The notes beneath the pieces are model-generated. The model ran no database searches. It was not told the origin of the DNA and saw only the letters and a program-made list of their open reading frames with translations. The position numbers were made by a program, and so were the translations under genes. Below, piece by piece: positions 3,001 through 31,200 of a stretch of DNA of 64,000 bases. This stretch comes from Laetmonice hystrix (taxonomy: Eukaryota). Numbering within the stretch: position 1 is the first letter of the stretch; every line of letters starts with the position of its first letter. The stretch covers positions 15,004,001 to 15,068,000 of the forward strand of contig OZ249445.1 of NCBI GenBank assembly GCA_965235115.1. Direction: 5' to 3'.

Positions 3001-3605
3001 TAACAAATGTGAAAAGGCGTTGTGCCTGCGATTGAAAATCCCCGCTTTCCTCTTTACTGGGATGGTTATTTCTCACACTTCTATCCCTTTCTGCTTACAG
3101 ACCTGCCAGTAATTGTTTCAGCGATTCCACTACATTGTGTTGGGAACATTCCATTTGCCATTACCTCTTTGATGAGAACCAGGCTTGCTGCATCCCCAAT
3201 TTCCCCCATACTCTATATACAAGAACATGCATACTGTTTTATGCCATTTAATGTTGCTGTTTGCAATCAATATATCTGACTTCAAACAACAAGCAATCAT
3301 GATATGTGTATCACTTTACTCCTCAGCAGACAAAAACACAAGACAAAGCAATCCCAGGGAAAATTGAAGCCTTCTTATTTTGTTTTTCTCAACAGATTTT
3401 CCACATACACAACAGTAGGAAAAAAAAATTCCAGAGAGGAGAAACTCGATATTCAGGTCAAGTCGTTGGCAAGTGGAGTGTCCCCTGAGTGCAGTGACGC
3501 AACTACATAAAGCCCTCACCCCACCTTGGGGCTCTGTCTTTTTCAAAAAGTGCCCTTCGCTTCATCTTTCTTTGGGCTTTTTACTAAAGGCGTTTTGTGT
3601 TCCAT

Positions 3606-3821
3606 TTACATCTTTTGGAACATATCATACTTTTCCTTCATTGAAAGGTTGTGGACCCGCGGATCGTTCCTTTTCCTGCTCCTGGCCCGGTTGAGTGCCT
3701 CCTGCAATGATCCAGCGAACGGGTCGTTACCCGCCGAGGTGGGTGGAGGCGGCTGGGTGACGTTGACGGGTTCGTTCACCACGGGCTGTGGTGCCGGGAC
3801 GACAGGTGGGGCTGGAGCTTT
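3606..3821 (-). CDS. NHERF: Terminal coding exon (phase 0): Pro-rich linker plus EBP50_C-like ERM-binding tail KAPAPP...FAGSLQEALNRARSRKRNDPRVHNLSMKEKYDMFQKM*
   Basis: Acceptor ttgtccatgttacag|AAA and TAA at 3608-3606. The last 13 aa (LSMKEKYDMFQKM) align without gaps to human NHERF1 MDWSKKNELFSNL, and the preceding SLQEALNRARSRKR aligns to SLAMAKERAHQKR. Confidence 0.85.
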   Translation of the reverse strand, partial: KAPAPPVVPAPQPVVNEPVNVTQPPPPTSAGNDPFAGSLQEALNRARSRKRNDPRVHNLSMKEKYDMFQKM

Positions 3822-6800
3822 CTGTAACATGGACAACAACCGGAACGTTAACAATGCCCTGTGTAAAGAAAGTATATGTCATGCCATTGGATATTTCTTA
3901 ACAAAGTAAGGTATTTATGTACTTATTTCATTATATTTCACTTACACTTTATTTGGTATTCATTTTTAACTTGCAAAAATTGCATAATAAAGATGAACAC
4001 TACCAATAAATTATGTTTAAAAGTTACAAACGTTTTCCACTTTATTATTAGCATGTCATTGGCACAAAAAAACTTGCAGCAAAATTAAGCGATTACTAGG
4101 CCTACACAGAAAGCAAGGAGTACGAAACAGTGTAATAAAAAGGCGTTGTATGCCAATCGAATAAATATCAAAATTACATTTCTCTGAATAAAGAAAGTTG
4201 AATAACAACAGATGTGTGAGGAAAAAAAGCCGTCGTATATGCAGGAAAAATATTTAAAACCGAAAACAGGTTTTAATCTATTAGAAATAAAATAACTAAA
4301 ATACTATATACTTTCAATATTTCTTATAAAATCTTTAAAACATAAATTTAATACGGTATAATGTTCAATATGTTTGAACATTATAATTATTCATGAGGCT
4401 TGACTTCAGAACTAAGTTAAAGCGGGTATTAGCGCCTCTAGTCAACCCTGAAGATTCTGTCTTGCAGTCAGGGCTGTCTATATTTCTGCAGGAAACAGCG
4501 CAGAATTGTGCATTTTGTTTCTTTGCTGTGGCTCACCATACACCTGAAGCCCAGCTGGAAGGTCAGAGCTGTTAAACCCGACACCCAACAAAGCACCATC
4601 CCTTCCGCCCCCTCTAACACAACTCCTCTGTCTGTGCCTGTCGTCCAGGCTGTCGTCACAGACTCCGAACACCTGATGTTTTATATTAGGTGCAATCACT
4701 ACATCACATCCTCCTTTCAGTCTGAATTTGACAGTACCACAGCAGGACTCAACTCCCGGTGGAGTTTGGACAATGATCTCAGTCAAAAACTCGTTGATTT
4801 CTCATACCAATAAAATGACACTGGAGACCACTGATTTGCAACTGGAGAAAGAAGTACGAGTATATATTTATCATGTAACTGATAGAAGAATGTGACAAGG
4901 ACATGACAACAGGACAATACACATCGTACAAGACAATACAATACATGTACGTTTGCTACAGCTGTAAATTCTAAAATTAGTTGGGCAAATATGACATGTT
5001 ATTCTGGGAATATGTACAACGGCCATTCCCTTCTCCGCGTTAATTGCGACGTTTTCACTATCAACACTGAACCAAAAAGTAACTTTCGTCAATTGGTACA
5101 AAATACTACTTTTCTTCACAAGATCTGAAACGGGTCTTAATCACTATGTGATCAAGTTTTATTTTTATCTGTATTGCTACAGACGTGAAGGCACCAGGCG
5201 TGGTCCTTGATTCTAGAGAAGTGTATTTTTCATTACACAATCTTACTACTAAATCCATGAAAAGAGGCGAGACCTCAGCCTTTACCAACATCATCCGTCG
5301 AAATGTTGCAAATACTCAACCTCGGATTGAGGTCTGCGCATCTTTCGTGTGCCTTGGAAAAATTTGATGTACATGGAGGGGTTTGAAAAACCATATAATA
5401 TATGAACAGTCATTGTACCGGTAGCATAAAATGAAGGCCAGCAGTAATGACTTTAGGCAATAGAGAAAACAGGTTAACAGTGTCACAGTGTCGTAGTAGA
5501 TGTCAATAAGTTGGATGTAGCTTTGTGAAACTGCTGACCAAGTGACTTTGGCACTGGCTCCTGGTGGAGTCGCCAACTCTGTTAGTGTGATTGGTAAGAG
5601 AAAGGTTAACTCTGGCTTTGTTTAACCCCAGCGACCGACTGTTACATATAGCGTGAGTCCGATTAGCGCTCTCCCTGAAATGTGAACGGCACAGTTTGAT
5701 TAGTCCAATACCAAAGGCATCAATTTGTTGTGAGCACCTCTTACTTGGCACCATGTGTGTTATGCTCTTAAATTTCAGAACATATTACCGGGACTGGATT
5801 TCTTTTTCGATTGGTCATTTCGCAGTAAGCGTTTTCGACATGGTGCCAAATAGGATTTGCAGCCATGTAGTAGAGTAGCGCTGACTAAGAGGCTACTGGT
5901 AGTGCGATTTGAGGGCAGCTCCATACATAGCTTTTTCTGCCTCCGATGGAAACTCGTGCTTCGGGTGGGGTCATGAACTCTTCAACTTTGACATCGCCCT
6001 CGACATCAGCATCAGCAACATTATACGCCTGCATGGTGATGGAGGAGTCGGTCGAGTTGGAGCGGCTGGATTTGGTTGAGGAGCTACCATCTTCGTTTGC
6101 TTCCACAACACGGCGAGTATCTTCTCCGACTACGGTACGTACCACTGTAGTCTTCACCTGTTCTACCTCGTATGTGGCAGCGCTCTCACCATTCCGCATC
6201 ACAGGAGGCCTTTCTACAACATCACGGCTTGACGACCGAATCTCGTAGGAGGACCTGTCTACGGCGGCAGGCGACTGGCGGCCATCTTGGAACTCATATT
6301 GGGCCTTACGAATGAGCTTCACAGCGTCCTGAGGTGGAACAGAAACTTCCTGCACTGAGGAGCGGGTCTCATAAGATGATGAGTGCGAAACCTCTGGGAC
6401 TTCTGACTGGATTTCATATGTTGAAGATCGTGGACTCTCATAGGATGAGGAGCGAGCACTGCCTGATCCTGCAGAGTGCATCTCATACAATGAGGAGCGT
6501 GCACTGACTGGCACTGAGGAGCGGACCTCATATGAGGATCGTGCACTCCCTGGACCTGAAGATCTCATCGCATATGAGGAGCGTGGACTGACAGGTGCCG
6601 CTGACTTGATCTCATATGACGTGGACCGTCCACTGACTGGTCCTGAAGACCTTATCTCATACGACGAGGAGCGTGCACTGACTGGTGCTGAGGACCGAAT
6701 CTCATATGTTTGGACATTTTCAGCTTCTGGTTTTGAAACCTCACGGCTTGAGTGAACCTCGTAGGTTGAAGAGCGTGTTTTCTCAACAATTTCTGGTTCT

Positions 6801-9800
6801 GGTACCGCTGGTCTCGAAGACCGTACTTCATACGACGAGGAACGCGTACTGTACGGAACTGAAGATCGAATCTCATATGATCGGGCGTTTGACACAACTT
6901 CTGGTTCGGAAACCTCACGTACATTTCGTACAATCTCTGGTTCTGCAACACCACGTACCTCATATGACGAGTGCACAGTATCTGGAACTGAAGATCGAAT
7001 TTCATATGATGAAGAGCGCACATTCTCCACAACCTCTGGCTCCGAGACCTCTCTTCTTGGTGTCTGAATCTCATATGATGATGAAGAAGGGCTGGTCCGT
7101 GGTAGTGACCGCAACTCATATGAAGAATGAACGCTCTCCCTGACTTCTGGTTCATAAACCTCTTTAATTGATGATCGGGTCTCCCGGGGCAGAGAGCTTG
7201 TTCTTATTGGAACTGAAGACTGAACCTGATAGGAATGTCTTTCTGGGACAGAGGTCCTGATCTCTTTCACAACTTCTCGTTCTGAAACTTGAGTTGGCCG
7301 GGTTGCCTGTGAGGACCTGGCTGTGTACGAGGATCGGACCTCGTATGCCGACGGTCGGGCCCTGTGTGAGGCTTCAGGTTGGGGAGCCTGACTTGAAGTG
7401 GGGCGACCGCTATAAGGGAGGGAAGACCGAATCTCGTACGCTGACTTGCGGGTGTCCTTCACAATTTCTGGTTCAGAAACTGTATGTGATGAAGTCCGAC
7501 TGCTGTATGTTGGCGAGGACTTTATTTCATATGCAGTAGTACTGGTGTCTTCTACAAGTTCTGGTCCTGAAACCTTGTAAGATGTTGTACGGCTGCTGTA
7601 TGGGAGGGAAGACCTGACTTCATAAGCTGAAGGCCGGGCATTCTCCACATGTGTTGAGGATCTAGTCTCATATGACGAGGTGCGACCGCTGTAGGGTACT
7701 GACGATCGAATCTCGTATGAAGGGGGCCGTGTGCTGTCTTGGACGGATGATTTTATCTCATGGGATATCAAGCGTACATTCTCATCTACCATTGCTGGTT
7801 TATCTACAATATCTGTTTCTACTGGAACCTGGTCCCCAACTTCATAGCGGACAGTCTCCATGCCATCTGGGGTCCGCTCTCTGACTTCATACCGCACAGT
7901 CTCCACACCATCCAGGGACCGCTCTCTAATTTCATACCGGACAGTTTCCACTGGCGCTGGTGCCTGGTCACCAAATTCATACCGGACAGTTCCCACTGGC
8001 TCTGGTGCCTGGTCCCCAATTTCATACCGGACAGTTTCCACTGGCGTTGGTGCCTGGTCCCCAATTTCATACCGGAGAGTTTCCACTGGCGCTGGTGCCT
8101 GGTCCCCAATTTCATACCGGACAGTTTCCACTGGCGCTGGTGCCTGGTCCCCAATTTCATACCGGACAGTCTCAACACCATCCAGGGATCGTTCTCTAAT
8201 TTCATGCCGGAAGGTTTCCACAACAGCTGGTGCCTGGTTCTCATCTTCATACCGGATAGTCTCAGTGCCATCTGGGGACCTTTCTCTGACTTCATACCTG
8301 ATGGTCTCGATGCCTTCTGGGGTCCGTTCTCTAATTTCATACCGAACAGTTTCCACTTCTGCTGCTACTTGGTTCCTGCCTTCATACTGAACAGTCTCGA
8401 TATCATCAGGTAACTGTTCTCTTGTTTCATACCGGACAGTCTCCACACCATCTGGGGATTGTTCCCTAATTTCATACTGGATAGTCTCAGCTGCTGCTGG
8501 AGCCTGGTCCTCAATTTCATACCGAATAGTCTCAACGCCATCTGCGTCCCGTTCCCTGACTTCATACCGTACGGTCTCAATGCCATCTGGGCTCCGTTCC
8601 CTTATTTCATACCGGACAGTCTCCACAACTGCTGGTGCTTGGTCCCCGAGTTCATACCGAACAGTCTCAATGCCATCCCGGGCCTGTTCCTGGACTTCAT
8701 AGCGGACAGTGTCTATTGATGGCTGATCCCGGACTTCATACCGAACATTCTCCACATTTTCTGAAACCCTTTCTCCGGGTTTATAAACGACAGTTTCCAC
8801 CCTATTTGGGGCCTGGTCTGTAACTTCATACCGGACACCATCCACATCTGTCCGTACCTGGTCTCTCACCTCATACCGGACAGTCTCTACATTTACTGGG
8901 GCGCGTTCCCTGACTTCATACTCAACATGCTCCGGGACCCGCTCTCTGGCTTCATATGCCAGAGACCTTGGATCTACTTCGACTGAAGACTGACCGCTGA
9001 ACCTTGTAGATCTTGTAGGCCCACCAACTACCACTTCCGAACTCACTTCTCCAGTATCCCTTTCTTCAATCAATGCCACATTTCTGACCTCATTCACTAT
9101 TGGCTGAACTCGTGTCGAGTACTGTCTGGTTGTTTCCACTACGTCAGTGAAAGACTCAGGAGGTTCGATGTGTTCACCATGTTTGACCTCTTCCTCTGCG
9201 ATCACCACATTGTTTCCTGTGTAAACGACGCCGGCGGGCACGGAACCCACATTTACTATTTCTGTTGCACGATTGTACCTGTAATCGGGCTGAAGGAAAC
9301 ACGATCGGATATACAAAATAAGTAAATTTGCTCATGAAATGTACGTGAAAGGGGCACCGAAGAATGCCTCCTGTAATCTGGGTTTAATGTGCACTACTGA
9401 CTGCAGGGATGAACAAGTATTGGCAGGTGACAGGGAGAGTCACACGACTAGGCTTACACTGGGCGTGGTCGCCACAAGCATCTTTCTGTGTACGTTGAGC
9501 AGGAGAGGCTTTGCTTGTTGTCAGAAACCATACAATAACATTTGTATACTAACACTGTTTCACATTATCATCTGTAAGAGAATGAGATGCTTCTAATTAG
9601 CAAAGAATTTAACTTCTCAGAAACAATGAACATCATTATGGTTAGCGATATGAAAAGACATGATGTAATATAACATACAACACTGATACAAACCAGAGGC
9701 AGTGTACGCATCTGAACTTACCTGAATCTAATAAAAGAACCTGTTAGATGCCTACCTCGAGCGTAGGTTTTACTCTTAGTACTATACATAAGTCAATCAT

Positions 9801-12800
9801 CCAAGGCTGCTTACCTGCGCAGCATGCTTTGTGCAGTGTTTGCATACGATCCATCTTTTATGGAAATTGACGAGTCAAAAGAATCTCTTGAAGCCATGCA
9901 ATTTTGACACACCTTATCCCAGCAGATATTTTTAATTTTCAAGCTGCAGTCATTTCACCCTTCCTTTCTTAACTACAGAATTTAATTCCGCTTGATTTTT
10001 GTGGTTTCCCCTGTTCCATCTGGCGTGGCCTACATGGGTTAATCTCTAGCAAAATCAGAGTGTTACACTTGTTTAAGTTGCATAGAGCTTGCCTTTACAT
10101 AGCAATTTGGTGCGATGTGATATGAAAAGGAAAACAACGAAGTCCCTCTATTGAGGCCAGTCTTCTACCCTTTTTAACTACACTTATCCGAACAGTGCGA
10201 AGGGCTACTTGGCAAGAACATATAGCTGGGTAATTCAATTTACACAAAGTACCCTTTCTTTCTATCAACTAAAGCCCACTGAGGTTTCAACACTCTGCTG
10301 GCTGTTAGTGTTGTTAGTCGCTAAATGTTGAAAAAATATTGAAGACATGGGAAATAGTATATAATTGATGAACAATCGAACTATAGGTTTTATCTATGGA
10401 GAGTAGCACGATTGCTGCCAAGCTGGCTGTTGCTCTGGTAATCACTTTATATCTCACCTCTGGTTCGACTTGAATAATTTCATTAACAGGCATGGCTTCC
10501 TTCGTAACCTCTACATTGTTACTTTCAATGTATGCGTCTCCATTCATCTGATACACAAAGATGTAAACTATGGGCCCCCGCTTTACATACTGCATTTCAC
10601 ACAAAAAGAAGACTGGCACAATTTCACTTTGCTGCCCTACATTATTTTTCGCAATTGTACTCCTACTACCCATCTCCATAATGCGACACTGAAAATATTT
10701 TTCTGGTTCTTTATCCATTTTTAAATAATTTCCCGCAAACGTGGCTGTTACATGACCGCCGTAATTCAGTAGCTACACCCACAATCTGCCGCCGCGGTTA
10801 GACCGAAAGCTACTAGTCCGAACTTCTCACCTCCTCGGCCGTCACCTCCACTACAGAGATGGCAGCACCCGTCTCGATCACCTCTGCTTCCTTCTCCATC
10901 CCATTCATCTGTTGTGAGACATACACCTTTCACATGGACAACCTGCATACTAACTGACATCTACAATCTACGGCTCTATCTACTGCTAAACGTCGTATAA
11001 TATCAATCAATGTCTACTGTCAACTCCGCCATAAACCAACATCTGCCTTATTCCTCATAACTGAGGTAATGACAAATTGATATAATCAATCAGAGACAAA
11101 TAGTTGAACCGATGCTACGTATTTACTACATGAACGGCATGGCCTATATATTTATAAATAGAAACGTTTCTTTTAATTGTCAACCATTAGTAGTGAAAAA
11201 CTTGAGCTTTTTGTTTAGGTACCATATAGCAGCATGTCCACGGCATTCCTTGTTGCCGTTTGAAATAGAGTTAGTCATACTTGAATCTTTTTTCATCGTG
11301 ATGTCCTTTTAGCATACTTGTATCCCCATTTCCGTAACCCATCTGTTTTTAACATGATTAATTAAACTTCAAACGTGACATCATTATTTTTGTCAGTATA
11401 GTTTTGAAGCAGACAGTTGAGTTAGCACGTTTAAGTGACAGAACCAGAGATTCTGGCAAACTGAAACCATCGACCACCTTGGCCAGTGTCGCCAAGTATA
11501 GGATTGACCTCGTGCCATGCAGATTTGGCTGGCCCACTGCCAACGTTACTCATCAAGCGAGATATGGTCTGTGCAGATTTGGTGTTATTCTATAGTAATT
11601 TACCTGTTAATGTGGTAAATGTACCAAATCAAAGACAAATTGAAAAAGGTACTTTATACAATAATTATCATATCCATTTTACTCTCCTCCGCAACTGACA
11701 GAGTGAAGTTTAATAAGATTAGTTAGATGTTAGGAAAATTTCTCTTTATCATTTCGGAATGGTAAAGAAAATCTAAATAATATGCGACGGAGAAAATCAT
11801 ACGTGAATAAAGTGTTGAGATGTATGCATTTAGTGAAGATTACGTCAGATTATGACAAAATGTGATTATCTTCTCGAAGCAGAGTTTTGTTTCCAAGCCG
11901 ACAGCCAGTAGTGAAACAGGATCATATCCCTCACCTGATATGAAACAAACTCTGTCGGTTGTGTCTCTACATTTACTGTTGTGATTTCATCTGAGCTTCT
12001 ATGAATAGCTGTGGTTGTTGTTGTGGTAGTTGTTGCAGTGGTTGGGATGATGCAAACCGGCTGAACCACGTGGACATGTTCAATGTCACGGTTGAGGTCT
12101 GTGCTGGTTTTCTCTACTACAGCGCTTGTTGTCACATAGTTGACATCAGTGGCACCATTCCGTACAAGCTCAACACCAGCCTGTACAATCACAGCTTATT
12201 CAACTTACTGTTCTTCTCATACATACTACGTGTCGGTCAAATCATAATATTATAGTCATCTTTACCTTGTTAGCACTAAAGTTAAATTAGTTGAACTAGC
12301 TCTGTAAATTGGCCCTTGATTGCTCACCTCTGCGCCTGTTGTAGTAATAGTTTCAAACTTCTCACTGCCGCGTCGTTTGATCTGACGGGAATCAAGTTCA
12401 AAAGGTCAACCTCCGTCATACTCAATGTTACGATGACAACACCACCCCCGGGGTTAGTAAAAATTGCTGGCTCATTCAGCTTTCTCCAATCTTCTAGTGT
12501 TATATCCTTCCTTATTGGGAGAACTGTGAATCTAGTATTTTATATAAACGTCCTGTTCCGTTTCTGTAAGCAAGGTACCTATCAATACAAGAAATATTCA
12601 CTACAGTTCCACGTTTTTATATAACAGTTTCACATCATAATACTATCTTAGGTAACGAATAACACCCTAGCTCGGGTCACAAGGTTACAAGAGGCTTGCT
12701 CACCTCGTCCTGGCTTGTAACCGTTTCAACACTTTCCTCTACAACCATGTCCACTTGTCTGACGATCTGCGAGTACGTACAAAATAACGGGCTTTGTTAC

Positions 12801-15800: not shown

Positions 15801-18800
15801 GTATAAAACACAGTTCCTCTCTCTCTCCTGCAAAACAGAAACTGAATTGAGGACAGTTTGGGGGGGGGGGGATGTCCGTAAATGATTTGTGCTTTACTTT
15901 ACGGCCAGTTTAACGAGAAGCGAACAGAACGGTGCTCGGTGGCTGACGTAACGCTTCCATGCATGGTAGCAATGATAAGAGAGTGGTTGTCAGACCAGGT
16001 GTGGAGGCTTACCAACGGGTAGAACCTCTCCTCTCCACCCGCAGGCCCTGGCGAACCGTCTCTCGTCACGTGGTCCTCCTCCCAGTCACAATGGTAACCT
16101 CTTCTGTCTCCATAGTAACCGGTAGCAACCATCACCTCTTCATCATCCTCATCCTCCTCCTGACCATAGTAGTAGTCTTCTCTGTGGTGGCGCCGACTCC
16201 TCAACTCCCCTCCGTGATACCCATAGTATTTGTCATTATACTCGCCATCCTCCCTGTATGCTCCGTCGTCTTGCCTTCGTTCGCTGTCGTAGTACCGATT
16301 ATCGTTATAATCATAGTCACCTTCTCTCGGACGAGATCTACGGCTTGCTGACATTGAGTAGGAATCCCCCTGGTAAACTTGACCCGGACTGGTCTGGCCT
16401 TGACCCCTTGGAGACCTGGCTCCAGGGTCATGCTGTCCAGGCTGTGGGCTGACTGGACTCCGGGCATGAGAGAAACCAGCACGACATGTGGCATCGTAAT
16501 CGGCCCATGTTTTCATCTTGCTTGGACCGTTGTCCGGTGACGGAGAGATATATCTCTCCCGACCACTGGCATCATACACGGCCTGGACAACGGGCGAGTG
16601 AGGCAAGGCGCCGGGACGGGTGGCGCCACGCCTTCGCTGGAAATACATACTCGGCTCACCTCGAGTCTACTTGTACCTTACTTGTAAATGACAACATTAA
16701 ACAACTACCTTACTTGTGCTAACAACTTCCATTTTCACCCCAACGTACCATCTTAATTCTTAACTTTACCTTTATTGCAGCATATTTCACTCCTTCCTTT
16801 CCGAGATTTTACTGAGTGAATTGCTGCGAAATTTATGTAAATGAATATCCAAATTACTGGAAATCTTTCCAGAGACAGTACCCTCTTGTTGTACCTAGGT
16901 AATTGACACCTAATGCTAGTAGCGGTTCTAGGACAATATCGAAAAGCTTAGCCCTGGTGACGCATTACCACAGCAAAGTAATCAACCACTGAACCATTCA
17001 CGAAAATACACTCCACAGAACAATTAGAAGAATGGGACATAGCACTTTGGTGACCTCAAACAAGGCAGCGCCAAGACGGACATTCTCACATACATGCCAC
17101 GGCGACTGAACCGAGATGACGTAACTCACTTCTCTGACAGCGCTGTCTGTCGTTAACAGGCGCTGACAGCGCTGTCTATCTTTAACAGGCGCTGACAGCG
17201 CTGTCCATATTTAACAGGCGCTTTCCAAATCACGTATGAGAAGTTTTCGGCAAGCACAAGACAGAGATAACTCTTCAACGAACCGCGACATATGACACAC
17301 CAGGAACCAAACCATCACACGACAACAAGACGGCAAGTTCAGAGTTTGACAAAAACATACACAAAACTTAGTGATTCCAATACCATTTGGAAGTAATATT
17401 CTAGCAATATAGACGACAAAAGCATGCACTAAAAATTAAAGGTCTTAAACGATTATACCAGTACATGCAACATGCTTACCGGTATATGAGGTGGGCAGCA
17501 CGATAAATTAAAAGGTCTTATTTATTTCTAACCACATAAATGATTACACTGAAACGAATTAATTCCTCCCTACCTGAGCTGCTTCCACTGCAGTCGTCAC
17601 CTGTCCATTAGTCTGGGAAACTGTAGAACAAAATAGAAACCGGGTTTTCAGGCGATTTTCCTTTATGTCAAGTTTGCCGCTCACGTTGAATATGGACCTG
17701 GTACAACATTAATACCGGGACACAACATTTTCCATATAATTCTTTAAGCTATGTAACATGTCATTCTCTTGTAATTAGCCTTAAAGTCATGATTCTGTTG
17801 GTCATAAGACATTTACATTCACGTAGTAAGTAGGTTATGTTAAAAATGTTCATCTTTATTCATAATAGAGTTGGACTTGCTTTCCCCATCTTCATCTTTA
17901 TTCCTGACATAAGCCTGATGCCTACTGTTAAATACTATTAATATATGTACATGTACATGCGTCCTATGTGATTATATACAATACGTACCAGTCCAATATC
18001 AATTAAGGATGTAAACTATATTCTGTCTACATGAAATATATACAACCTGAACATTCACGCCGTCACTTAGAGATAATTTGAACAGCAATCGCTGTATCTA
18101 TCAAACGAGCACATCAGAAAAGGCAACTTAGAGGAGTAAAAAACTCTATATGTAAATCTGGCCCCCAAAGTTCCGACCATTTCTTTGATTGCGTGCTCTC
18201 TGTGTGCGTGTAATCACAACGTCATACGTATGTAACGGTCAGCTGTTTAGGACCATGAAGAGACAGCTTACCTGAACACATATACAATCTATGCAGATTA
18301 ATGCTTCGTGAACAGACATGCTTATATACTCAAACAAACCATACATGCAGGGTGAGCGACCGCTTTTATCCAGCAGCAAGTCTTGGAAGAATGTCCGACA
18401 TACATGTACCAGAGCCTTAGGGGAAGTCAGGAACCGTGTAGATACCATACATACCGTACTTTACCGGCTAGCACCAAATGATCCTCCGTCGAAGAATTTG
18501 GTTTTCATTGGTCCAATTAAAGAAGGTGTTTGAGAGAAATAAATCATAGTATATAGATGAGAGTGACTATAGGGCTGTGGCACTGCATGTCATGAATTCT
18601 CCAAGATAACAATCATAGATACCAATGTGAATGAGCCCTGACAGGCTGATATCATGCATCAATCTGCAGACATGGTGAAACATCTGCAGTAATTCTCAGT
18701 CATTCTGTATGTACTGTCAATCATTGTAAAACACCTATACATCATTCTATACACATCATTCGGAATACTACATCTGAGTACATAAAGGCACAATGTTTAC

Positions 18801-21800
18801 GAAAGCAAAATAAGACAAGCATTAATCGCAAATAACCGCCAACAGTTAAAGTTGTAGGAGAAAAGGTTTTCACAGGATACTTCCACAGGCTAAGCACACA
18901 TACTGGCAGTTTACAAAACGTTTTAGACTGCGTACAAAAATTAGCTAAAATTAGCTAAGATACACGGAAAAAATCGTTATTATAGGAAAAAGAAATTCTA
19001 TACCGACTACACTTGGACTGACCCAATGCTGATTGATAGAAATATATAAACACTATGAATGAGACTTTGTCCCCGGTGGACTACACAGGCTGAGAACCTA
19101 CAACCCAAGCGTGGGGGCTGTGTCCAGTGATGGGAACCGGCATTTCCTTCACAACACCATGTGGAATATGGAACGCACTGAACAATGTATTCCCGATCTC
19201 TGGTAAACTCCTTAGATAATTTAGTAATATATCCACAGCCTGATCAGACCCTGGCATTTAAATAAGACCATCTCTTAAATAGAAAGTGGTAATTGTAGAA
19301 CTCTGTTTTTCATGATGTTCCTGTAGAAAAGACTCCCTTGTGACACCACGACCCGGCAGTTTCTATGTGTCACCCCACCAAGTGTGAGGGTGGGGAGGGC
19401 CAAATTTGAATTGACCACCGAGGACTTCATTGTCTAGTTTCCCTAAGAATTAGATCTTCGCTAACCCCATTTCTAATACGAACAAAATATCTATCAAAAT
19501 CCAAAGCAAATCCAAATGCCTTCGCCATAACAATGGCCTTCACTACTTTGGGTTGATCCACTGACTATTGCAGGGATAACGCTCTAAAAACCAAGTACTG
19601 CTATGAAGAGGAGCACCAGACATTAAACAGGACAGGAGCTTTACACAGGCTGTTGATAGCTTTGTGTCTGCTATAGTCATCTCTGGGACAAGCCAGTGCT
19701 CCACAAAGTAATGTTATCGCAAACATAACTCTCTCCAATCTCGTTATCCTCCCCATCTGACTTCTTGATGTCAATGCTCAGGGAAAGGAGTTCCAAATAT
19801 TTCTTGTAAATGATAGATTTTTCTGAAATAAAAAAAAAAAATCTCCTGCACTGCGACAGGGTAGATAGGTAGGTTAATCAGCCTACTAAGGTCGTTTCCT
19901 ATACAGCTCTATCAAATACGCAAAAAAAAGAAAGAAACAAAAAGACGTCTGTGAATGAATCCACATCATGTGTTTTCTGTATCTTCACATCCATGTGCTT
20001 TATACACCATTTTGTTTTCATGCACTTTGAAAAGAAACCATAACGTTCATGCAGGCTGGCGTCGAGAAGGCGAGGTCGGCCGTGCCTGCCGCCATCAGCC
20101 AGGTGAGTTCAGACAGTGAAGCTTCAACCAGTCACAGAGAGATATCCCACATCAGCTACCATTTATTTTAAGGTGGTAAGTTACTACTACTGGTTATATA
20201 AAGCAGAAATATTATTTGGAGAAAAAAATTGAGCCTCCTTTTCCCTGGGAGTTATGATGTTATACCGGTTCCATGCCTAGAGGGCTGTGACGGTCTTACC
20301 TCTGGGTTCCTCGGGTGGACAGGCCAAATGGACAACACTGGGCATGGATGCATTGGGCCAAATCCCTCGCTCCACATAATAACTGTTTGCAACTTCATCC
20401 ACCACCAAGAGTCGTACTTGGTTCGGGTCGCCAGTGATCCTGTTAACCACAGTGCGATGTTCCTCTCCTTCCACGCTGACGTCATTCACCTCGATAACCC
20501 GGTCTCCCTTCATCAGCCCGGCCAGGTCGGCGGGTGTCCTCGGCTCAACCCGGCCCACAAAGTTCCCCGTCTTGGTCTTGTCGTCATGGAGACGGAACCC
20601 GTAACCTGTGTACGTCGGCCATTTACGCAGGTGACAGAGTCGGATCTGAGGTTCTTGCCCTGTTGTCTGCGGCGGTGCCTGCTCCAGAGTGTCGATGCGC
20701 TCCACGACTGATGGCAATAGTATTTACAAGTCAGAGGGTGAGGTCTTGACCGTGAACTCAATATAACCAACTCTAACTACTCCCATCTCTGTCATCATCT
20801 ACATATGAAGACAGCCCAAAGGTCATAATGTCAATCATCAACCGGCCACAAGGGATTACTGTAATACAATGTATATGTGAAGCATTCCCTTGTTCAGTTG
20901 ATATGTGAGATGCGTAACGCCTAAAGAAGATTGACATGGGTAAAACATGATAATATAAATTATTCAATTATGTTTCCAGTGGTCAGAAATATTCTTGTCG
21001 GTTTTCCTATTAATGGATCTCCATGAACATATACATGAATATACACAAATATCATTAAATTAGCTGTTTCATGGATTAGTTATTTCATGTTTGTATGGGA
21101 AAGGGCAGTTATGGTTTTGATGGTATATTTAAATTCTACAAGGCTATACCTATACTCATCTAAATAAGCAAGCTACAATTAGTGTCAATGGTCTACCTAT
21201 AAACGGAAATGGAAACTACACCCAAAAAATATTCAATTGTCCTTTGATGCTATGAACTCTTGGTGGAATACACACTACATTTGTTTATAGTTCAAACCTG
21301 TTTTTTTTCTTGCAATCATGTGTTTCATTAAGAAATTTTAACTACTGAAAATAGTGATACAGCCCCCCCCCCCCCCCCCGCTTGAGGACGCCTGGGGCGC
21401 AAACTATCTGACTTGGATACTATATGTTAGCTTTAATGTAAAACTGCTAATGATTCAGTAACTGAAGTAGACCTACATGTAATTCAGTTGACAACATGAT
21501 TCATATAAATTGACTTGTTATATGAAAGGTGACAGTCAATACCCCTAAATACTTGCGAAGTCCTCCATATGAATTTCCTTTCTTCTTATCAAAGAAATAT
21601 TATTGTGTTGAACAAGTCGCTCACTCCCTACCTGACTAACCTCGCTTTTGTCTATATTGTGTAACCTACAGTGACCTAGCTTTCTTTTATCAAAAGTCAG
21701 TGCCGTCCAGTGACGTACAATCTCTATATCATGCCATATCATTAGAAAACAACGCTTTTTCTTCAATGGCAGTTACCAAGCAGCGTTCCCAACAAAATTA

Positions 21801-24800
21801 AAAAAAAGGCAAATGAATCAAGAAGTGACCGTCAAATTTATGTTCATAAAGGAAAAAAAACTGCCTTCCAAATGACGCCTGTATATCGGCATACCCGACC
21901 ACAATCCCTTCAATCTGTGTTATGCTGTGCATATTGATACCAGATATCAAGGCAGTACCCCAATACGTGAACGTGTCCTAGAACCTGAATCTGACCGAAA
22001 TCTCATAAACCAATGAAAGGTGTGCAGACGTTGTTAAAGCTCAGCAACCTTTGGACCCCTCTACACTAGTACTCCCGTAACCTCGTGTTATCAGCCACAA
22101 ATTGACTGCCTTAATTAACAAAGCCGTCCACAAAAATCAATGGTGTTAGACCTCACCACCAGCGGATAAGTTCCTGCAACAAACACAGGGTGGCGCTACC
22201 GATCTTTGAGTGATCCATGCTCGGCGGTGACGTGGTTCAAGGTAGGCCTAAACGTTTTGCAGTGGTTCCTGAGGCGAACAGTTAGTGGCAGTGGTGCGTT
22301 TCGCTCCGTCCGCCGCCAGGGGTCAGTGCGAGGCGGTATCTACAGGTTAGATCCCATCATCCAACTATGGATAGTAGTAGTACCTCCTCCATGATCCTTA
22401 CCTTCTCGGCGGTCGGGTGACGTCAGGTGGACGATGCCGTCAAGGCGCGAGTGCGGCCAGATCTGGTCGTACAAGTACTTGTTGACGACATCAGGGGGCG
22501 CCACCAGCATCTCGACATCGTCCTGGCGTGAAGTGATGCGCTGGATGACGGCGCTGTGGTCGTCGTTACGGATGCTCATACCGTTTACCTCAAAGATTTG
22601 ATCCCCGACCTCCAGGCCAGCCGCTTCAGCTGGGTAGCCTTCCTCTATGTTTCCAACAAAGTGACCTGGCTTTCCCTGTTCTTCATGAAGATTGAAGCCA
22701 TAGCCATCACAATCGTGCCACTTCCTGACAGTTATCAGTCTCAGTGTACGCGCAGGTTCGTGTAGGCCGTTAGTCTTCACCTCCACGGCTACAGGTACAG
22801 ATTGGCATCTCATTAGATTCCCTTTCTCTCTCTTTGGGGCCTGACTGGTGTAATTCTAGACCGTAAACTTTGTCTACGGATAACCGACAATTATCAGGTT
22901 TTTTCGATACCTATTCATCTCTACCCACCACCATGTATTAGTTCCCCCGCCTGGAGGTCGTGGTCATTGAAGGACAATTGTTATGTTGTCATGGAAACTC
23001 TGTCTGTAGAATCTATCTAATGGAGATTTAAAACATATCTTTTACACCAATTATATTGTGAAATATTAGGAGCAATACCTCCTTGCAGAAGATACACCAA
23101 TCTCCGCAAACAAACCATGTATGTATTTTTCTAATATATCCTTGATAGTGTGCAATTCATGTACTATTTTTATGAATCGAGTTGGTACACAAATGGCACA
23201 ATATGAATATCATATCAGTAATTAGGACACGACCCTTTTAAACGAGTAAGATTCTGAGAGACACTCAAGGCAAACGGAGACAGGAATGTTGCGCCTATTA
23301 CCTACATATGGCAGACGTACACCAAACATGCATGAGTGATTGAGTATGAAAGACCACGCCTGTGGGTGACGAGTGACGTGACAAGTTGTTTATACTGTGG
23401 TACTATGAGATTAATAATACGGTGTAGTAGAGCCAGGAGATGGCTGCCACTGGCAGCGGTCTCGGTGTTAACACTCAAACCTACTAGCAGTAGAAGTAGG
23501 AGCAGCAGCAGGCGCGGCGGCCCAGGGTTAGTTGGAGTTTCAAACGGTGCATGTCGGCGCCGACGCTTACCTTGGACAGGAGCGTCCCGTTCTGGGCAGT
23601 CAAGCACTGTGATGTTGGGCAGGTCACAATGTGGCCACATCCCCCGGGACCTGTAGAATTGGTCGGCGTCAGTGTCCGCCACCAACAGTTCAACCTTGTT
23701 GTCCTCCGACTTGACCTTCTTGATCACCTCATAGTGGTCGTCACCGAACACGCTGTGACCGCCTACCTCAATGATCTTATCCCCGACTCGTAGGCCTGCT
23801 GCCTCGGCCGGCGAGTCGGCATCTACGTTGCCCACATAGTGCCCTGGTTTGCCCTTTTCATCGTGCAGGTTGAATCCATAGCCGTCGAAGAACTTCCACT
23901 TTCTGAGGCGACAAAGTCGCAGCATTGGGGCTTGGTCTTCCTCTACGACAGGTTTTGGGACTTCTGAAGCAACCGCTACGACAGTCGCTGCTTCCATATG
24001 GTTAGCTGTTTAAAAATCCCAGGTTGTTTTACCAAAACAATCCCGTTGAACATATATTTGTTAGCCCGATCTATCAAGTCGTCATATTCTTTTATATAAT
24101 GTAAGTACAAGTCTGCTGGGACTGGACATATGAAACTATGAGAAGAATTATTTACCTTCTTGAACAAGAACAAAAAACTCAAACTTGAGAACCTATCTCG
24201 TCTTAAACTTACAATATCTACATAACAAATTACAATAAATACTATCATGATTCGACATAAATGTACCCTAAAGCAAAGAACTTATAATCACGTCATCTCC
24301 ACACACTGCTTTAGACTAATAATGAGGAACTCGTGGTACCTCAGATATTAGTTGTAGTTAATGAAGGCGTTAACTGTTTGCCCTGAACCACTCACGGTCA
24401 TCAGTTAAACCCATGTTATCACTATAACTAAGAGAAAATCTCATTATTATATTAGACATAGCGAATGCCAGGATGGCAATCGTATGATCTGGTCATTATT
24501 GACTGAGGACTACGTTAGCACTACTATACTATGCTATAGTCAATTAAACACTAAGACTACTTCCACACGTTACAAAACGAGTACATAACACACATACCTA
24601 AACAAAGCTTCACGAAATGTTACAAGCAATTTGAAAAGTTAAAGCCATCACTACAGTAGGACAAACGGTATGCACAAAATAATTTATTGTTTGATTATAT
24701 GGGACTTAACTTCTAATACATGCTGTTTGTTACGTTTATACCTTCTACGCAAACTAGCAACTAGTAGGTTAAATTAAAACTACAAATCAAAGGTTGTTAA

Positions 24801-25215
24801 GTTCTTCCTTATTGCTTTTAAACCACAGTTTGAAGCAATAAGCAAAGGAACCCCAGGTCTTCCTAACCCACATAACGCAGATGCCATGAGGTTTTTTTGA
24901 TATACCAGATACCTTGAAACGAAATGCTCAATTTATCTATGAGCACTATGTTGAGAAACTTTGTCATCAACTTAGAAATTTTTGGCATGAACGAAAAAAA
25001 TGTGTGAAATGAAAGCAGACGAAAGTTGATGACCGAACAACTAAATGTTGTGTCCGTCTCCATGACGACAGATTCCCGGATGATGACCGCTGACGTTTTA
25101 CTACGTCTGACGTCATCCACCAATGGTGGTGGCCGGTTGGTGGTGTTAGTATTAGGTGTGTTAGTCTGACGGAGTGTGTTCAGTACGGGTTAAATCAATG
25201 GGTGGGGGTGGGGGT

Positions 25216-25246
<31 letters not shown>

Positions 25247-28200
25247 CAGTAGCCCAAGTGGAAGTCTTGTCTTAACCAAGACTTGCAGCTTACCTGAGGA
25301 CTGACGATCTGGACACTGAATGACGTGCACGTTGTCCATCTTGCTGTGCACCCAGATTGACTTGTCCTGATAGTACCGTTCCGTGTCAAGGTCCACCACT
25401 AGCAGATCGACATGGTCGCTGTGTTTCTTGATATGTTCCACCACCTGTTGGTGAGAGTCTTCCAGAGCGTTGTGGCCGTTCACCTCCACTATTTTATCGT
25501 CTTTCTTCAGACCAGCGGCGTCGGCCGGCGAGCCGGTGTCGACGGAACCGATCAGGTGGCCTGGTCTCATCTTTTCCTCATGGAGGTTAAACCCATAGCC
25601 GTCAAAGTCTGACCACTTTCTGAGGCAGCAGAGGCGTGGCCGAGGGCCTGTCTCGGGTGAAGCTGTTGGTGGCAGGCCAACAAGGACAGGACCGTTACAT
25701 ACGTCAATAAACACAAATAATCGGTCGAGTTCAATCAATGCCCTCGAGCTGAAATCCTCAAGTTAAGAATTTCATCTTTTGGTACTTAAACCACATACAA
25801 GGAATTCCCACTGCACCCCAAACAGATCAATGCAAGAATTCATTGCTATCAGAAACACTGGAAGTCCTCAAGTCGTTTACAAGACACCGCTGATATTATG
25901 TATAGTTATAACCTAGTGAAAGATTGTGGAAGAATAAAACAGCAGTGAGTGAACGTGATCGATCAATGCTGCACCAAGTACATCAATACAGAACAATCCT
26001 GAAACAGAAAGTACACACTCCACGACGACAAAATCTGGTGTTAGTATCTACCGACGATACATTATGATGGAAGGAAAAAGGTTCAAAGCAAAATGACAAA
26101 TAGGGTGGGAAAATGTAAACTTAGTGGCAAAAATACTAGGAAGCGACTGAAGACTAAAAATAGTAAAATATTAGCAATATGTCTCAGTAACAGTACATTT
26201 TTCACCGTTTGTACACGGTAAGTTAATTCTCCCTCCTTTTGAAACCACAGGTCACACTTATTGTTCTCTCACCAGCAAGTACCACTAAATCCACATTCCC
26301 TTAGAACCTGTTATTTTCAAACCTATTTGTAAGTATCTAATCCACAGAGTGACGACCCACCAGTATACGTCACGTATGACGAGTTCGTCGAGGCCTTCAT
26401 TCTAGTTAACCAATTCATATTAGAAATGGCATACTACAGTTTCCTCCTTAACGTATAATTGGACAGAGTTTCTGGTTATACTTGGTTAATTCAAAACTAA
26501 AGTAGCCTGTCGATATGTAAAGTATATCCCTTGTAGATTAAAGCATGAAGTGTCCGCGCGTGAAACCTTAACTTCTACAAACCACCAAACCCTGCCCGTG
26601 TCATACCACTAAGTAACGACAGGCGAGTGTAACAGTGAACCATAGTTTGACACATTATGACTCAGAGTTTGATACATTATAAAACAGAGTTTGAGTAATT
26701 TCAAACCATGAAAGTCTCCCACGACCTGCTACTGCCTAAGGACTGTGAGATGATCTCTCTATCAGCACAGCCATCCTGGCTGATTTCCTGGGCAGCAACC
26801 TTCATACTGTGTTAGCCTGTTGATCATGTGACCTGTTAAAGGGTGACTTCAACGGTTCTCATTAGGTAAGAGTGCTGGATGTGCATTGCTAACGTGCAGT
26901 AGTTGTCCTTCCCAGTACTGAGCCCTTGTCTGGCTTATTTGTAATATAACCAAACAGAACACTCGAGGACTCTTACCTGTTACGGCCACATAGGAGGAGT
27001 CCATTACGTCCAGCCCTGCCATTTTGCTATCAACTGTGATTGACTGGCTTTTGAAGTACTTTTCAGCCTCAGAATCGACCACCAAGAGTTGGACTTCATT
27101 GGGGCTCTGAATGATCTTTGCCACCACCTGTTTGTGGCTGTCACCGACAACGTTTTGACCGTTCACCTCAACTACTTTGTCCCACTCACGTAAACCAGCG
27201 GCATGGGCAGGAGAGCCTTGTTCTATTGCGGTAACCAAGTGGCCTGGCTCGTTCTTCCTCTCTTGGAGGTTAAAGCCATAGCCAGTGTAGTCAGGTCTCG
27301 TCTTTATGTGGTAGAGGCGGGCTCGTGGACCTGTGCCTAGTAGAAGGTATGTCGCTATTTATGGCAAAGATTTGTCAATTCAAATTTTTACCAGAGATAT
27401 GAAATTATGCAGATCTAATATTTAACCTTCCACCTACAATTATTACTTAATGACACCATTCCAGTTTTGTATTAGTTTCAGACACGTAGAACAAGTACTG
27501 TGAGATGTACTCATTAAGAACCAAATGGTGCATAAATGGATTGGAGCTGATGTGAAAGAAATATCAAGATGTCAACTATCCTCCAAAATTGTGAGCAAAG
27601 GACACCAAATTTACATCATTGGAATGCCAAAATGGGATACTCATGAAGATATTTTCTTCACACTTGTCTTTTTAAGTCGTTTGAATTGCAGTTTCTTTTT
27701 TTTGTATTTGCAATTTTAAAAAGGTCGTCAGCCAGAAGAAACCAATCTTTTTTCTCTTTTCCTAAGATGCTATTGTGTTTTGGTTTCTATACTCTATCTT
27801 GTTCTCGGGTACTGTGAATATGATGGTGCATTCCTTCAAATTCAGCACACTTTGGCTGCATCTGAAATGTGTGCTTTATAAACAAATAAAGTGCTGTGTG
27901 CAAGGGTGAGGATGATACTATAGGTGCAAGGTGACACAGACTCAATCTACAGTACATTTAATTTTCATTTTTAATTCAATGTTTTGATTGTTTTTTTTTT
28001 AGTAAATCCTAATTATCTGAGCGTGATTAATCTGTGATTGCCAGCACACTGAAGCACAAAAACCGTACTTGAAAGAACACAATAATGGTTCACACTGCCT
28101 CACTTGACTGTAGACCATTGAACCAACACCTTAATGTTAGCATGTGATTTCAATGTTCCAGTGGCAATAATTAACGTGGAATGCTAGTAGTTCCCAATAC

Positions 28201-31200
28201 CAGGCCCATCTGTGTTATACAGCCAAACGCCCTAGGACTCTTACCTGTTACGGCCACATAGGAGGAGTCCACTACGTCCAGCCCTGCCATTTTGCTATCA
28301 ACTGTGATTGACCGACTTTTGAAATATTTTTCAGCCTCAGAATCAACCACCAACAGTTGGACTTCATTGGGGCTCTGAATGATCTTTGCCACCACCTGTT
28401 TGTGGCTGTCACCGACAACGTTTTGACCGTTCACCTCAACTACTTTGTCCCAATCACGTAAACCAGCGGCATGGGCAGGAGAGCCTTGTTCTATGGCGGC
28501 AACCAAGTGGCCTGGCTCGTTCTTCCTCTCTTGGAGGTTAAAGCCATAGCCAGTGTAGTCAGGTCTCGTCTTTATGTGGTAGAGGCGGGCTCGTGGACCT
28601 GTGCCTAGTAGAAGGGTACGTCTCTATTTCAGGTAAATTCTTTTTGTTCAAAACAGCCTGTATTTCATGGCAATTATTATCATCATAAATGTTACACGTT
28701 CTAAACTAATTTCTGTTTAAACATATTAAACATAATATATTATAGTTATTGCATGTTTACGACTATCAGGACTTAATATCCAGTAACGAAAACATCAAAT
28801 CCAGTGGCATTGATAGAATGGTTTTTTTTTACCAGACATCATGATATTGTCCATTTTAAAAAGAAGAGTTGTTAATTACTAGTACTATATCGATATGATT
28901 AGAGACTGTACTGTTTACCAGTGCAACAGCAACTCTTGCCACCATCCTTTTATTAGATTGTACGTGAACAACTTACAACAGTTATATCATGTCACGTGTT
29001 GTGGTGAAGTCACAAAAGCTGCGTGTAAGAGCCAGGACCCAGTTCCTAAAAACTTAAGATCTTGCTGAAGTTTAACGTTTCTGATTGCCTGGTCTAAGCA
29101 GACGAGCCAATCAGAAACGTTAAGCTTAAGCTTAAACAAGAAGTTTTTAGGAACTGGGTCCTGGTCTGTGAACAAGTTACCGACATGCAATCCCTTGGGC
29201 ACACCCAAGCCCAACTTATCTGTTACCCACATTAATTCCTTTGTTATAGCACCATCCTGAATGCATACCTTAGGCAACTTATTTTATACATGTGTATTAT
29301 GTATGCTTTACTTAGGTGCCCCCAACACCAGGTAAATTTGTCATCATTTCTTTTTTTTCTTTTTTTCCCATAACTTTTTTAGTGCAGTTCATCACTATGT
29401 TATGGAGCAATAAACCTTTGTCGACGCCTGTGTTATATGACAGCAGCCACCACTACAGGGTTAATGATGTGTGTTGGTTTAAGTCACATTAACCCCTGCC
29501 TGCCGCTGTGGTTCGCCTGGTGCAGGGTTAGTTTGGGTACTTACCCACGGTACCCAGGTGGGGCGTGACGTCATTGACGACGACGGTGGCCGGGGCCTGT
29601 TGACGGGAGACCAGGAGGGCCTGTTGACCGGTGACCGGGATGGCCTGTTGACGGGTGACCGGGAGGGACTGGCTCCGGTAGTAGTCGTCCGTCTCGGCCG
29701 TCACCAGTAAGAGCTTCACCCGGCCCTCCTGCTCCTTCACCTTACGCACGACGTCATCGTGCGAGGCGAGCACCACTTTCATATCGTTTACCTCGATGAG
29801 CACGTCGTTATCGCGTACCCCGGCCGCCTCCGCCGGTGACCCCGGCTCCACGGCGCCGATAATGTGCCCCGACCGATGGGCCTGCTCTTGGACTTCGAAC
29901 CCGTAGCCGTCAAAGTCGGGCCGCAGGGCCAGGTTACATATGCGGGGATGGATACTTGGGGGGTTGACGACGTCCACTGACGGGGAGGCTGAACAGGACC
30001 AAATGAGAACACCCAGTCACCCACTGCAGGCATAAACCGACACTCACACCGGCAAGTAGAGGTTTCCCTCTCAACCATCATACACAAACCTGTGATTGCA
30101 TTCTCCAAACCCTTCCTCTCAATGTATCGGTTTGATGGCACCATACAAGTCATCATCTATCACTACAAGCCAAGCCAACAATTTGCTTTAGCCATCTGTG
30201 CATCATTTACACACAAAAAACTCTTCTTTTTCAATGGTTTCATTCAATCTGGTTTCGTCATTCTTGCCATATCGATCATAAAGCGATTGTTTATGACCTG
30301 GTAAGGTCAGTGTCCAACTGTTGGTGATCACCACACCTGTCACCTTCCATACCTGCCCGCCACCTGGTACAGTGTCGCCACCTTGTGGCCCCTCTGCACA
30401 CCCCGCCAACCGCCGGGCTGCCAAGTGCAGTCTGCATCATATGTTACAATTTCCCTGCCAACTCTGATTAAAAACCGTAAGAAAAATTCCATCAATATCT
30501 TGCAGCCAAAGAGTCACTTTCTGTTAAAGCACTCATATAAATAAAGTGTCTTCCCGACGGGAACTTCTGGCATAAGTATTGTAACAAAACAAATGCCGAC
30601 TCTTCTGTTAATCATGGTGTTAAAGCTCCAGTGAATCTTTTAGCGTGATGTGTTACTATTTCTAGACTAACTAACGAATTAAAGTTCCTGATTTCACAAT
30701 CATATTGGACGTGGGCCCTTTGTGCGTTACTTGTTAAAAGCTCAAGGTATCTTTACATGTGTCGGCATTGAAAGCAATGGCTTGTAACCATTCACCATTA
30801 GTGGCGTGACCTACACCATTATATAGGTCAACGGTTGGCACATCATTATGCATCTGTTGGATGTCATGTTTTATACATGGGCCTACCTCCTGTTTCACTT
30901 CCAAGCTTGCGTGTGTTTTTTTAACAGCAGTGAGTCTCGAGTCATTTTGTACAAGCTTGTCTCTGCTAGATCAGAGGAAGATGTGAGAATGCCGATGTAA
31001 GCACCCCGAAGCCGGATCCAAACGCACACAGATCCAAACGGTCAGACTCTCTCCAAGTTCTCTTCTGAACCAACTCCGTACATGAGCATTCCATTAGTCT
31101 CCAGGTTAGCCAACTGTGAGATTCATTTGCATTCCGTTTTATTTTTGTAATTATTTCTGGTGAGGAGGCGGTTAAGTCCCTTGAATGCAGCGGTAGTTGC

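Follow-up and report, generated by a model that had tools for sequence, protein, structure and literature searches.

A repeat-born giant coding exon, expressed and omissible, in a NHERF-type scaffold gene of Laetmonice hystrix

In the 64,000 nucleotides (nt) of Laetmonice hystrix DNA analysed here (contig OZ249445.1; the whole stretch is referred to as the window), a giant exon of 1,121 codons lies within a gene for a scaffold protein of the NHERF type. The analysis confirmed that this exon is a real, expressed, repeat-born coding cassette which can be omitted from the mRNA. Two mRNA forms are present, one with the giant exon and one in which a 47-nt exon is joined straight to the last coding exon, or tail, with the intervening block left out, and the long and short isoforms have one common C-terminus. 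It is suggested here, with a probability of about 0.55, that the exon is a lineage-restricted cassette encoding a splicing-controlled long tether or multivalent strip between an array of PDZ domains and an ERM-binding-like tail.

The exon, its transcripts and its host gene

The features on which the argument depends are the following (window coordinates).

5927..9289, minus strand: giant coding exon, phase 0-0 (open frame, AG/GT flanks, contigs of run X4)
3606..3821, minus strand: last coding exon, 71 residues and stop, ending LSMKEKYDMFQKM-COOH (X4 joints, translation)
17574..17620, minus strand: 47-nt exon, joined straight to the tail in the short form (X4 loose end, splice sites)
20280..49261, minus strand: sixteen single-exon NHERF-type PDZ domains (stop-to-stop frames with a GYGF motif)

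All 1,121 codons (3,363 nt) of the giant exon are open on the minus strand, where they are nested in a stop-to-stop frame of 1,148 codons (5888-9331). The plus-strand frame of the same interval contains many stops, and a six-frame check over the 3.4 kb of the exon found a single frame open. Read on that strand, TTCCTTCAG, an AG acceptor with a pyrimidine-rich tract and CAG at its end, stands before the exon, and GTATGG, a GT donor, comes after 5927. The original prediction, which was made from the letters of the window, had placed a single coding exon of 1,121 residues and phase 0-0 at these coordinates, and it was correct in all of these respects, the frame being that of the minus strand.

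Four public sequencing runs carry the stretch, all from one sample and none labelled as RNA, and they were compared over 6,000 letters. Three of them are DNA-like, with contigs that pass through introns. The fourth, X4, was classed as RNA-like solely from its exon-only contigs and spliced joints; its contigs cover 3556-3821, 5927-7936, 8089-8996 and 9063-9291, and the depth between them is almost nil. One X4 joint leads from 5927 to 3821 and skips 2,105 nt that begin with CT and end with AC, or GT..AG when read on the minus strand, and this joint is a spliced transcript. The giant exon is joined in frame to the tail, GGRKSY running on into KAPAPP, with a stop 71 codons on, and the expectation that the exon would be expressed and joined to the coding exons of the gene is in this way borne out at its downstream end. 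A second X4 contig stops at 3824, at the same acceptor, and carries a loose end of 26 nt that matches 17577-17602 exactly. The match is unique in the window and falls within the 47-nt exon, the splice sites of which are visible. As the single open frame of the 47-nt exon ends in phase 0, both RNA forms read the same tail. It had also been proposed that the giant exon can be included or skipped whole, and the X4 form that omits it agrees with this; the jump observed, however, takes the whole block between the 47-nt exon and the tail, and skipping of the giant exon alone was not seen. The X4 contig depth of approximately 120 over the tail and 33 over the giant exon hints at a commoner short form, but such depth is unreliable and contigs cannot give inclusion levels, and no conclusion is drawn from it.

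The first Met of the giant exon is at codon 477, and since there is none before it the exon must be read from upstream exons. The X4 depth drops to 3.4 immediately beyond the acceptor at 9289. This drop, the position of the first Met and the 0-0 phase argue for splicing of the giant exon to upstream coding exons. One of the DNA-like runs, X2, has a contig end at 6048, inside the giant exon, with 29 loose letters for which there was no match within the 64-kb window with up to 3 mismatches; possible explanations are a structural variant, a difference between haplotypes and an artefact of the assembly graph.

The PDZ array lies upstream of the giant exon on the same strand. Pfam PDZ (PF00595) was matched by all five of the exons tested, with E-values from 6e-12 to 5e-7. 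When one of them (25193-25762) was searched against the PDB, approximately the top 35 matches were NHERF1, NHERF2 and NHERF3, and its best solved relatives were PDZ2 and PDZ1 of NHERF1 (E 1.3e-21). The identification of the host as a NHERF protein is well supported by these exons. In the sequence of its parts, with PDZ modules first, a Ser-rich linker next and last a short helix-like tail with an aromatic-x-x-hydrophobic-COOH ending, the protein resembles NHERF1/EBP50 and NHERF2 (SLC9A3R1/2). These have two PDZ domains, however, whereas there are 16 PDZ exons in the window, and the vertebrate linker is roughly a hundred residues long whereas the one described here can take in at least 1,121 residues more.

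The tails of NHERF1, MDWSKKNELFSNL, and NHERF2, MDWNRKREIFSNF, bind subdomain F3a of the FERM domain, with the summary motif [L/I]Fxx[L/F]-COOH (PMC10249358), and NHERF Motif-2 has been given as MDWxxxxx(L/I)Fxx(L/F) (PMC3155308). The tail described here ends M-F-x-x-M-COOH, and its Phe (position -3) and its hydrophobic residues (positions -4, 0, -10 and -12) align with those of NHERF1. It differs from NHERF1/2 in lacking the MDW of Motif-2, Asp-Trp included, and in its -QKM ending, which is not a class I PDZ ligand; for these two reasons head-to-tail autoinhibition in the style of NHERF1 is doubtful here. Neither Pfam EBP50_C (E<=0.1) nor any PDB entry (phmmer, E<=10) was matched by the tail. 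From its sequence, binding of the tail to ERM proteins is plausible.

Two repeat families and the constraint on them

The giant exon consists of four parts, all on the minus strand.

8960..9289: non-repetitive N-terminal part, residues 1-110 (no YE period before residue 112; predicted structure score approximately 30)
7805..8959: repeat family A, residues 111-495 (unit listing, tandem repeats with 45- and 135-nt periods)
6125..7804: repeat family B, residues 496-1055 (unit listing, codon use, predicted structure score approximately 30)
5927..6124: non-repetitive C-terminal part, residues 1056-1121 (translation, unit listing)

Tyrosine occurs 65 times in the exon and is followed by glutamate in 49 cases. 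About 49 YE(I/V) motifs had been counted by hand, at a spacing of roughly 15 residues in a chain rich in E, V, R and S; the number is exact for the YE pair, but YE(I/V) itself occurs only 36 times. The spacing and composition were as described, exactly 15 residues separating successive YE pairs in 27 of the 48 gaps, and S, E, V and R making up 14.1%, 13.5%, 12.8% and 10.9% of the chain. When the exon was shuffled 20,000 times with its composition kept, YE occurred 8.8 +/- 2.7 times, with a maximum of 21, compared with the 49 observed. The autocorrelation of tyrosine positions has peaks at lags 15, 30 and 45, and Tandem Repeats Finder reports periods of 45 and 135 nt at 7828-8710 (19.6 copies, 72% matches) and a second 45-nt period at 6436-6706. 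A Pfam scan of the exon found no credible domain, in line with the prediction that none would be recognisable; matches to HTH_92 and DUF3145 were rejected as repeat noise, with no stretch passing alone.

Family A comprises approximately 26 units of 15 residues with the consensus ETVRYEIRERSPDGV, that is ETVRYE(I/V)RERSPDG(V/I), alternating with ETVRYEIGDQAPAPV. The units form a super-repeat of 45 residues, and over residues 193-492 the 15-residue period is perfect, with no insertion or deletion. It is a strong and acidic polyampholyte, with a charged fraction of 0.37 and a net charge of -0.12 per residue. Family B has 25 looser YE units of the type R-S-S-S-Y-E-(I/V)-R-S-S-x-P-x-S-x, among which five EPE(I/V)V motifs are scattered; Ser and Thr make up 29% of it, and it contains 36 RS dipeptides and 23 R-x-x-S sites. 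What the two families have in common is the Y-E-(I/V)-R core and the 15-residue spacing, and nothing else.

The codons of the two families also differ. In family A the Tyr codon is TAT in 24 of 24 units and the Glu codon GAA in 23 of 24, and because of this near uniformity the array appears to be young or homogenised. In family B, Tyr is encoded by TAT 19 times and TAC 6 times, Glu by GAG 19 times and GAA 6 times, and the flanking Ser by four codons (TCA, TCG, TCC and TCT); since synonymous codons vary at the motif, Y-E has been kept at the level of the protein. Between family A units the ratio of non-synonymous to synonymous differences per site (pN/pS) is 0.29 in the seven-residue core and 0.68 in the eight-residue linker. 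Between family B cores pS is 0.76 and pN/pS is 0.47. To judge from these comparisons, family B is older than family A.

Of the 22 variants among the runs in the exon, which are a sample as the variant table listed only the best supported, 14 are synonymous, where 25-29% would be expected to be so for random changes (binomial p 1e-4 to 8e-4). Seven of the eight replacements are conservative (S/N, T/S, A/S, K/Q, A/T, V/I and D/E) and the eighth is Q/L. The reading frame is preserved in a 6-nt deletion allele at 6799. The largely silent variants and the frame-keeping indel point to constraint on the protein, and the exon shows signs of purifying selection.

Relatives of the exon were sought in several libraries. 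A word-indexed search of 5.8 billion proteins, which sees only proteins of 616-1,962 residues, returned nothing at E<=0.001, and a feature search of the ESM Atlas gave no usable match. An exhaustive HMMER search of 1.84 billion representative proteins gave 41 matches; the four that were read are unrelated proteins with 13- to 18-residue repeats of their own (DFGDFSAAPAEVKKD, KEKYEVRDNVSDPCI, collagen-like and VEVPKYDFAVGQPET) and were counted as artefacts of periodicity. One library protein, P0002 (643 residues), has at its C-terminus sixteen copies of the 15-residue KEKYEVRDNVSDPCI unit, a Y-E-V-R repeat of the same period in an unrelated protein, the N-terminal part of which we take to be Ku80-like. 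No paralogue was found in the 627-Mb genome of Laetmonice itself, where the matches were the giant exon and unrelated 45-nt minisatellites that are open in several frames or full of stops. Long and very uniform minisatellites of about 45 nt are numerous in this genome (contigs C30, C3, C18, C7 and C2), several with two or three open frames, and they are the source of all non-self matches to the exon in it. A search of the literature on giant or repeat-bearing NHERFs produced nothing relevant. As far as these libraries reach, the giant exon appears to be single-copy and lineage-restricted. Because neither a domain nor a homologue was found in the searches, no enzymatic or other folded function is suggested for it.

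Structure was predicted with AlphaFold2 from the single sequence, without an alignment. For the whole exon the mean predicted local distance difference test score (pLDDT) is 39; family B and both ends are at about 30 and have no secondary structure, and family A is at 50-65 with one strand per 15 residues. When residues 193-492 were modelled alone the best model had a mean pLDDT of 61 and the other four 48, 42, 42 and 41. In that best model, strands of 10 residues and turns of 5 residues form an up-and-down antiparallel meander, with pLDDT 70-80 over approximately 120 residues. The best Foldseek matches to the family A model were a mutant of OspA (engineered single-layer sheets) and the TCP10 domain of CPAP, at E 6e-3 and a template modelling (TM) score of 0.12, which is non-significant. 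VIA-align gave Z-scores of 9-12 to the walls of beta-barrels (12.1), lipovitellin and an OspA variant (9.3), and shape matches in the AlphaFold DB include the C-terminal domain of CENPJ and a titin-like protein. The description of the chain as likely disordered thus fits its Ser/Arg-rich half, while the acidic ETVRYE half is weakly predicted to form regular beta strands.

Possible roles of the cassette

Repeat expansion built this coding cassette within a very large scaffold gene of the NHERF family. When the exon is included, the PDZ array, which binds cargo, and the tail, which faces the cytoskeleton, would be set apart by 1,121 low-complexity residues. Of the repeats, the first 385 residues would contribute an acidic, strand-prone polyampholyte, and the 560 that follow a Ser/Arg-rich segment, probably disordered, in which PEVK-like EPE(I/V)V motifs occur together with numerous R-x-x-S sites. 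The likeliest mechanism, a tether controlled by splicing, would greatly extend the reach between membrane cargo and cortex, its contour length being approximately 400 nm and its size as a random coil tens of nm, and the approximately 49 evenly spaced Tyr-Glu sites would offer a multivalent surface, which is probably phospho-tunable. The PEVK region of titin, in common with other entropic-spring linkers, is likewise a long, cassette-spliced, low-complexity and charged chain of repeat units containing Pro, Glu and Val, and the five EPE(I/V)V motifs are reminiscent of it. However, P, E, V and K make up about 70% of titin PEVK and only 35% of the giant exon (46% counting Arg), which does not have a composition of the PEVK type; it is rich in Tyr and Ser, is a single exon instead of a series of small ones, and forms part of a cortical scaffold, not of a sarcomeric filament.

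NHERF proteins are the textbook example of adaptors by which transporters and receptors are anchored, via ERM proteins, to the actin cortex; the linker in them is short and has a regulatory role. In this gene, splicing would give a scaffold with 16 PDZ domains a linker more than tenfold longer, built from 15-residue Tyr-Glu repeats of two families. If the exon is a tether, the gene provides a natural experiment on linker length and valency in membrane-cortex complexes; if FERM docking or phosphorylation of the repeats were true, it would represent a new way to make a scaffold multivalent. The giant exon provides, in addition, a clear example of a coding exon that arose recently from repeats, is expressed and bears signs of constraint on its protein.

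A number of considerations weigh against the tether. That the giant exon and the PDZ exons are present in one molecule is something we infer from their common strand, from the phase and from the absence of a start codon, no read in the 6,000 letters compared linking the two. The tail matches the ERM-binding motif only in part, given the missing MDW and the lack of EBP50_C and PDB matches, and no orthologue of the giant exon was found in the protein libraries searched. The YE core of family A is nearly without synonymous variation, and its regularity may be a product of recent expansion or gene conversion and not of selection; expansion may also be mutationally easy in a genome rich in unrelated 45-nt minisatellites. 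Finally, a tether is the default reading for any low-complexity linker.

Alternatively, the exon may be a tolerated by-product, a 45-nt minisatellite that expanded in an optional exon and was selected only for an open frame and a harmless chain, with Tyr-Glu having no specific role. Such an origin would agree with the nearly uniform codons of the family A core, the many unrelated 45-nt arrays, the failure to find a homologue in the libraries or in the same genome, and the omission of the exon from one mRNA form. On the other hand, the excess of synonymous variants is greater than the mere avoidance of stops would need, the copies of family B are old by their pS and yet have kept Y-E with mixed codons, the same core and spacing occur in two distinct families, and one frame in six is open over 3.4 kb where satellites are open in several. 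We regard a by-product as unlikely, and rank it first among the alternatives to the tether. Ranked after it, and also unlikely, is the suggestion from the structure predictions that family A folds into a long antiparallel beta-meander rod of about 12 nm which spaces or self-associates, with only family B being flexible. The family A unit could well suit such a fold, as T-V-R-Y-E-I-R alternates hydrophobic and charged residues before a turn-like SPDG or APAP, and the models place a strand in every 15 residues, most confidently within residues 193-492. Their nearest shapes, the OspA central sheet with its engineered extensions and the CPAP/CENPJ G-box, share with the predicted meander its short repeats and charged strands, but there is no sequence kinship with either, generic barrel walls match no worse, and the family A shape is itself a weak single-sequence prediction on which the five models disagree. 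The Foldseek match is not significant, and Z-scores of 9-12 reflect merely a common arrangement for repeats. AlphaFold2 tends to over-regularise repeats into sheets, and the charged fraction of family A would also suit a disordered polyampholyte. A rod of this kind could nevertheless coexist with a tether.

Two further alternatives assign the tyrosines a binding partner. As regards docking, FERM domains of ERM proteins bind Yx[FILV] peptides as an added strand at the F3b groove and NHERF tails at F3a (PMC10249358), and Motif-1alpha, RxxTYxVxxA, is bound as a short strand on beta5C (PMC3155308). The Y-x-(I/V) cores might constitute a docking array for F3b grooves, in the manner of ICAM-2, Crumbs, MISP, KIRREL3 and TBX4, by which the long isoform would gather many ERM proteins besides the single one held by the tail at F3a. 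Yx[FILV] occurs 43 times in the giant exon and 12.3 times in shuffles, and although the exact RxxTYxVxxA is absent from it, six family B sites conform to a relaxed pattern of the ICAM-2 type, R..[ST]Y.[VI]..[AS], with 0.05 expected (for example RSSSYEIRSS at residues 758 and 873 and RSSSYEVRSS at 816). The host is itself of the ERM-binding NHERF kind, and the genome holds a very conserved ERM gene. Yx[FILV] is, however, a motif of low information, the [ST] and [AS] positions come cheaply in a chain so rich in Ser, the motif does not account for the invariant Glu at +1, and in family A the residues at -4 and -1 are Glu and Arg, in place of R..T. Ligands of F3a have moreover been reported to inhibit F3b binding allosterically (PMC10249358). 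Known F3b ligands carry one motif in a juxtamembrane tail, whereas the giant exon has dozens of candidate motifs, which lie in a cytoplasmic scaffold and are marked by the invariant +1 Glu. A docking array is on balance quite unlikely. Its extension, which we consider slightly less probable again, is that the cassette makes this NHERF an ERM concentrator, with the repeats at F3b and the tail at F3a, phosphorylation of Tyr or Ser switching docking off, and splicing setting the valency of the membrane-cortex linker; the long isoform would then recruit many ERM, or other FERM, proteins per scaffold. The least probable of the alternatives is a multi-tyrosine phospho-platform like that of p130Cas, in which kinases modify the repeats, possibly on stretching, and proteins with SH2 or PTB domains dock on them. 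There are 65 tyrosines, 49 of them in a fixed Y-E context and regularly spaced, many tyrosine kinases tolerate or like an acidic residue at +1, and the tyrosines of family B are in a segment predicted to be unstructured, and hence accessible. The resemblance to Src-family substrates and SH2 ligands that had been claimed for YEI and YEV was nevertheless not upheld. A hydrophobic residue at +3 (YE.[ILVMF]) is found in 0 of the 49 motifs, where Arg occupies that position in 28, and YEE[IVL], YxN and YxxM are each absent, so that a single YxxP is all that the exon has of the canonical SH2 ligand classes. At -1 the residue is mostly Arg (20 cases) or Ser (14 cases), a position at which Src and Abl favour aliphatic residues, and the tyrosines of family A are within predicted strands. 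The substrate domain of p130Cas (BCAR1), which has been proposed as an extensible element, is similar in that a short motif with tyrosine recurs many times along a low-complexity region of a scaffold protein, but it has 15 YxxP motifs at irregular spacing where the giant exon has one YxxP and Y-E-(I/V)-R at a strict 15 residues, and the HMMER search of representative proteins found no sequence similarity between them.

Two ERM/merlin-like genes are present in the genome (C6:12735000-12744999 and C18:2485000-2494999), and the best FERM_C match of the genome, on contig C2, looks instead like a band 4.1 protein. The F3 lobe of the gene on C6 is split over three exons (7158-7265, 7537-7632 and 7781-7918 of that interval) and is, on our own reading, nearly identical to that of vertebrate moesin. 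A complex of this lobe, entered as three separate chains, with a 45-residue segment of family B was predicted without alignments and outside the calibration of the tool; its score of 0.02 counts neither way.

Other segments of the host gene

Three further segments between the 47-nt exon and the giant exon may be coding.

approximately 16013..16636, minus strand: predicted phase 0-0 exon, rich in Tyr, Asp, Arg and Gly, approximately 208 residues (open frame and in-phase AG/GT sites only)
within 13955-14494, minus strand: predicted phase 0 open segment (frame listing)
approximately 11935..12180, boundaries uncertain, minus strand: predicted exon of phase 0-0 and the best candidate for the giant exon's upstream neighbour (open frame and in-phase AG/GT sites only)

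The first of these is situated in an open segment of the minus strand (15902-16666) that has runs such as DYDYNDNRYY and EDYYYG and that lies within the block skipped by the short form. Within the PDZ array, the neighbouring minus-strand exons 26852-27358 and 28174-28623 are 95% identical in DNA (398 of 419 aligned bases), which looks like a very recent tandem exon duplication. Several of the PDZ exons in 29531-34420 on the minus strand start with short tandem peptide repeats (units of EVPVV, ANQIPV and VGAPAVGTVPV), and as these exons carry repeats of their own, the growth of repeats in linkers would appear to be a general habit of this gene.

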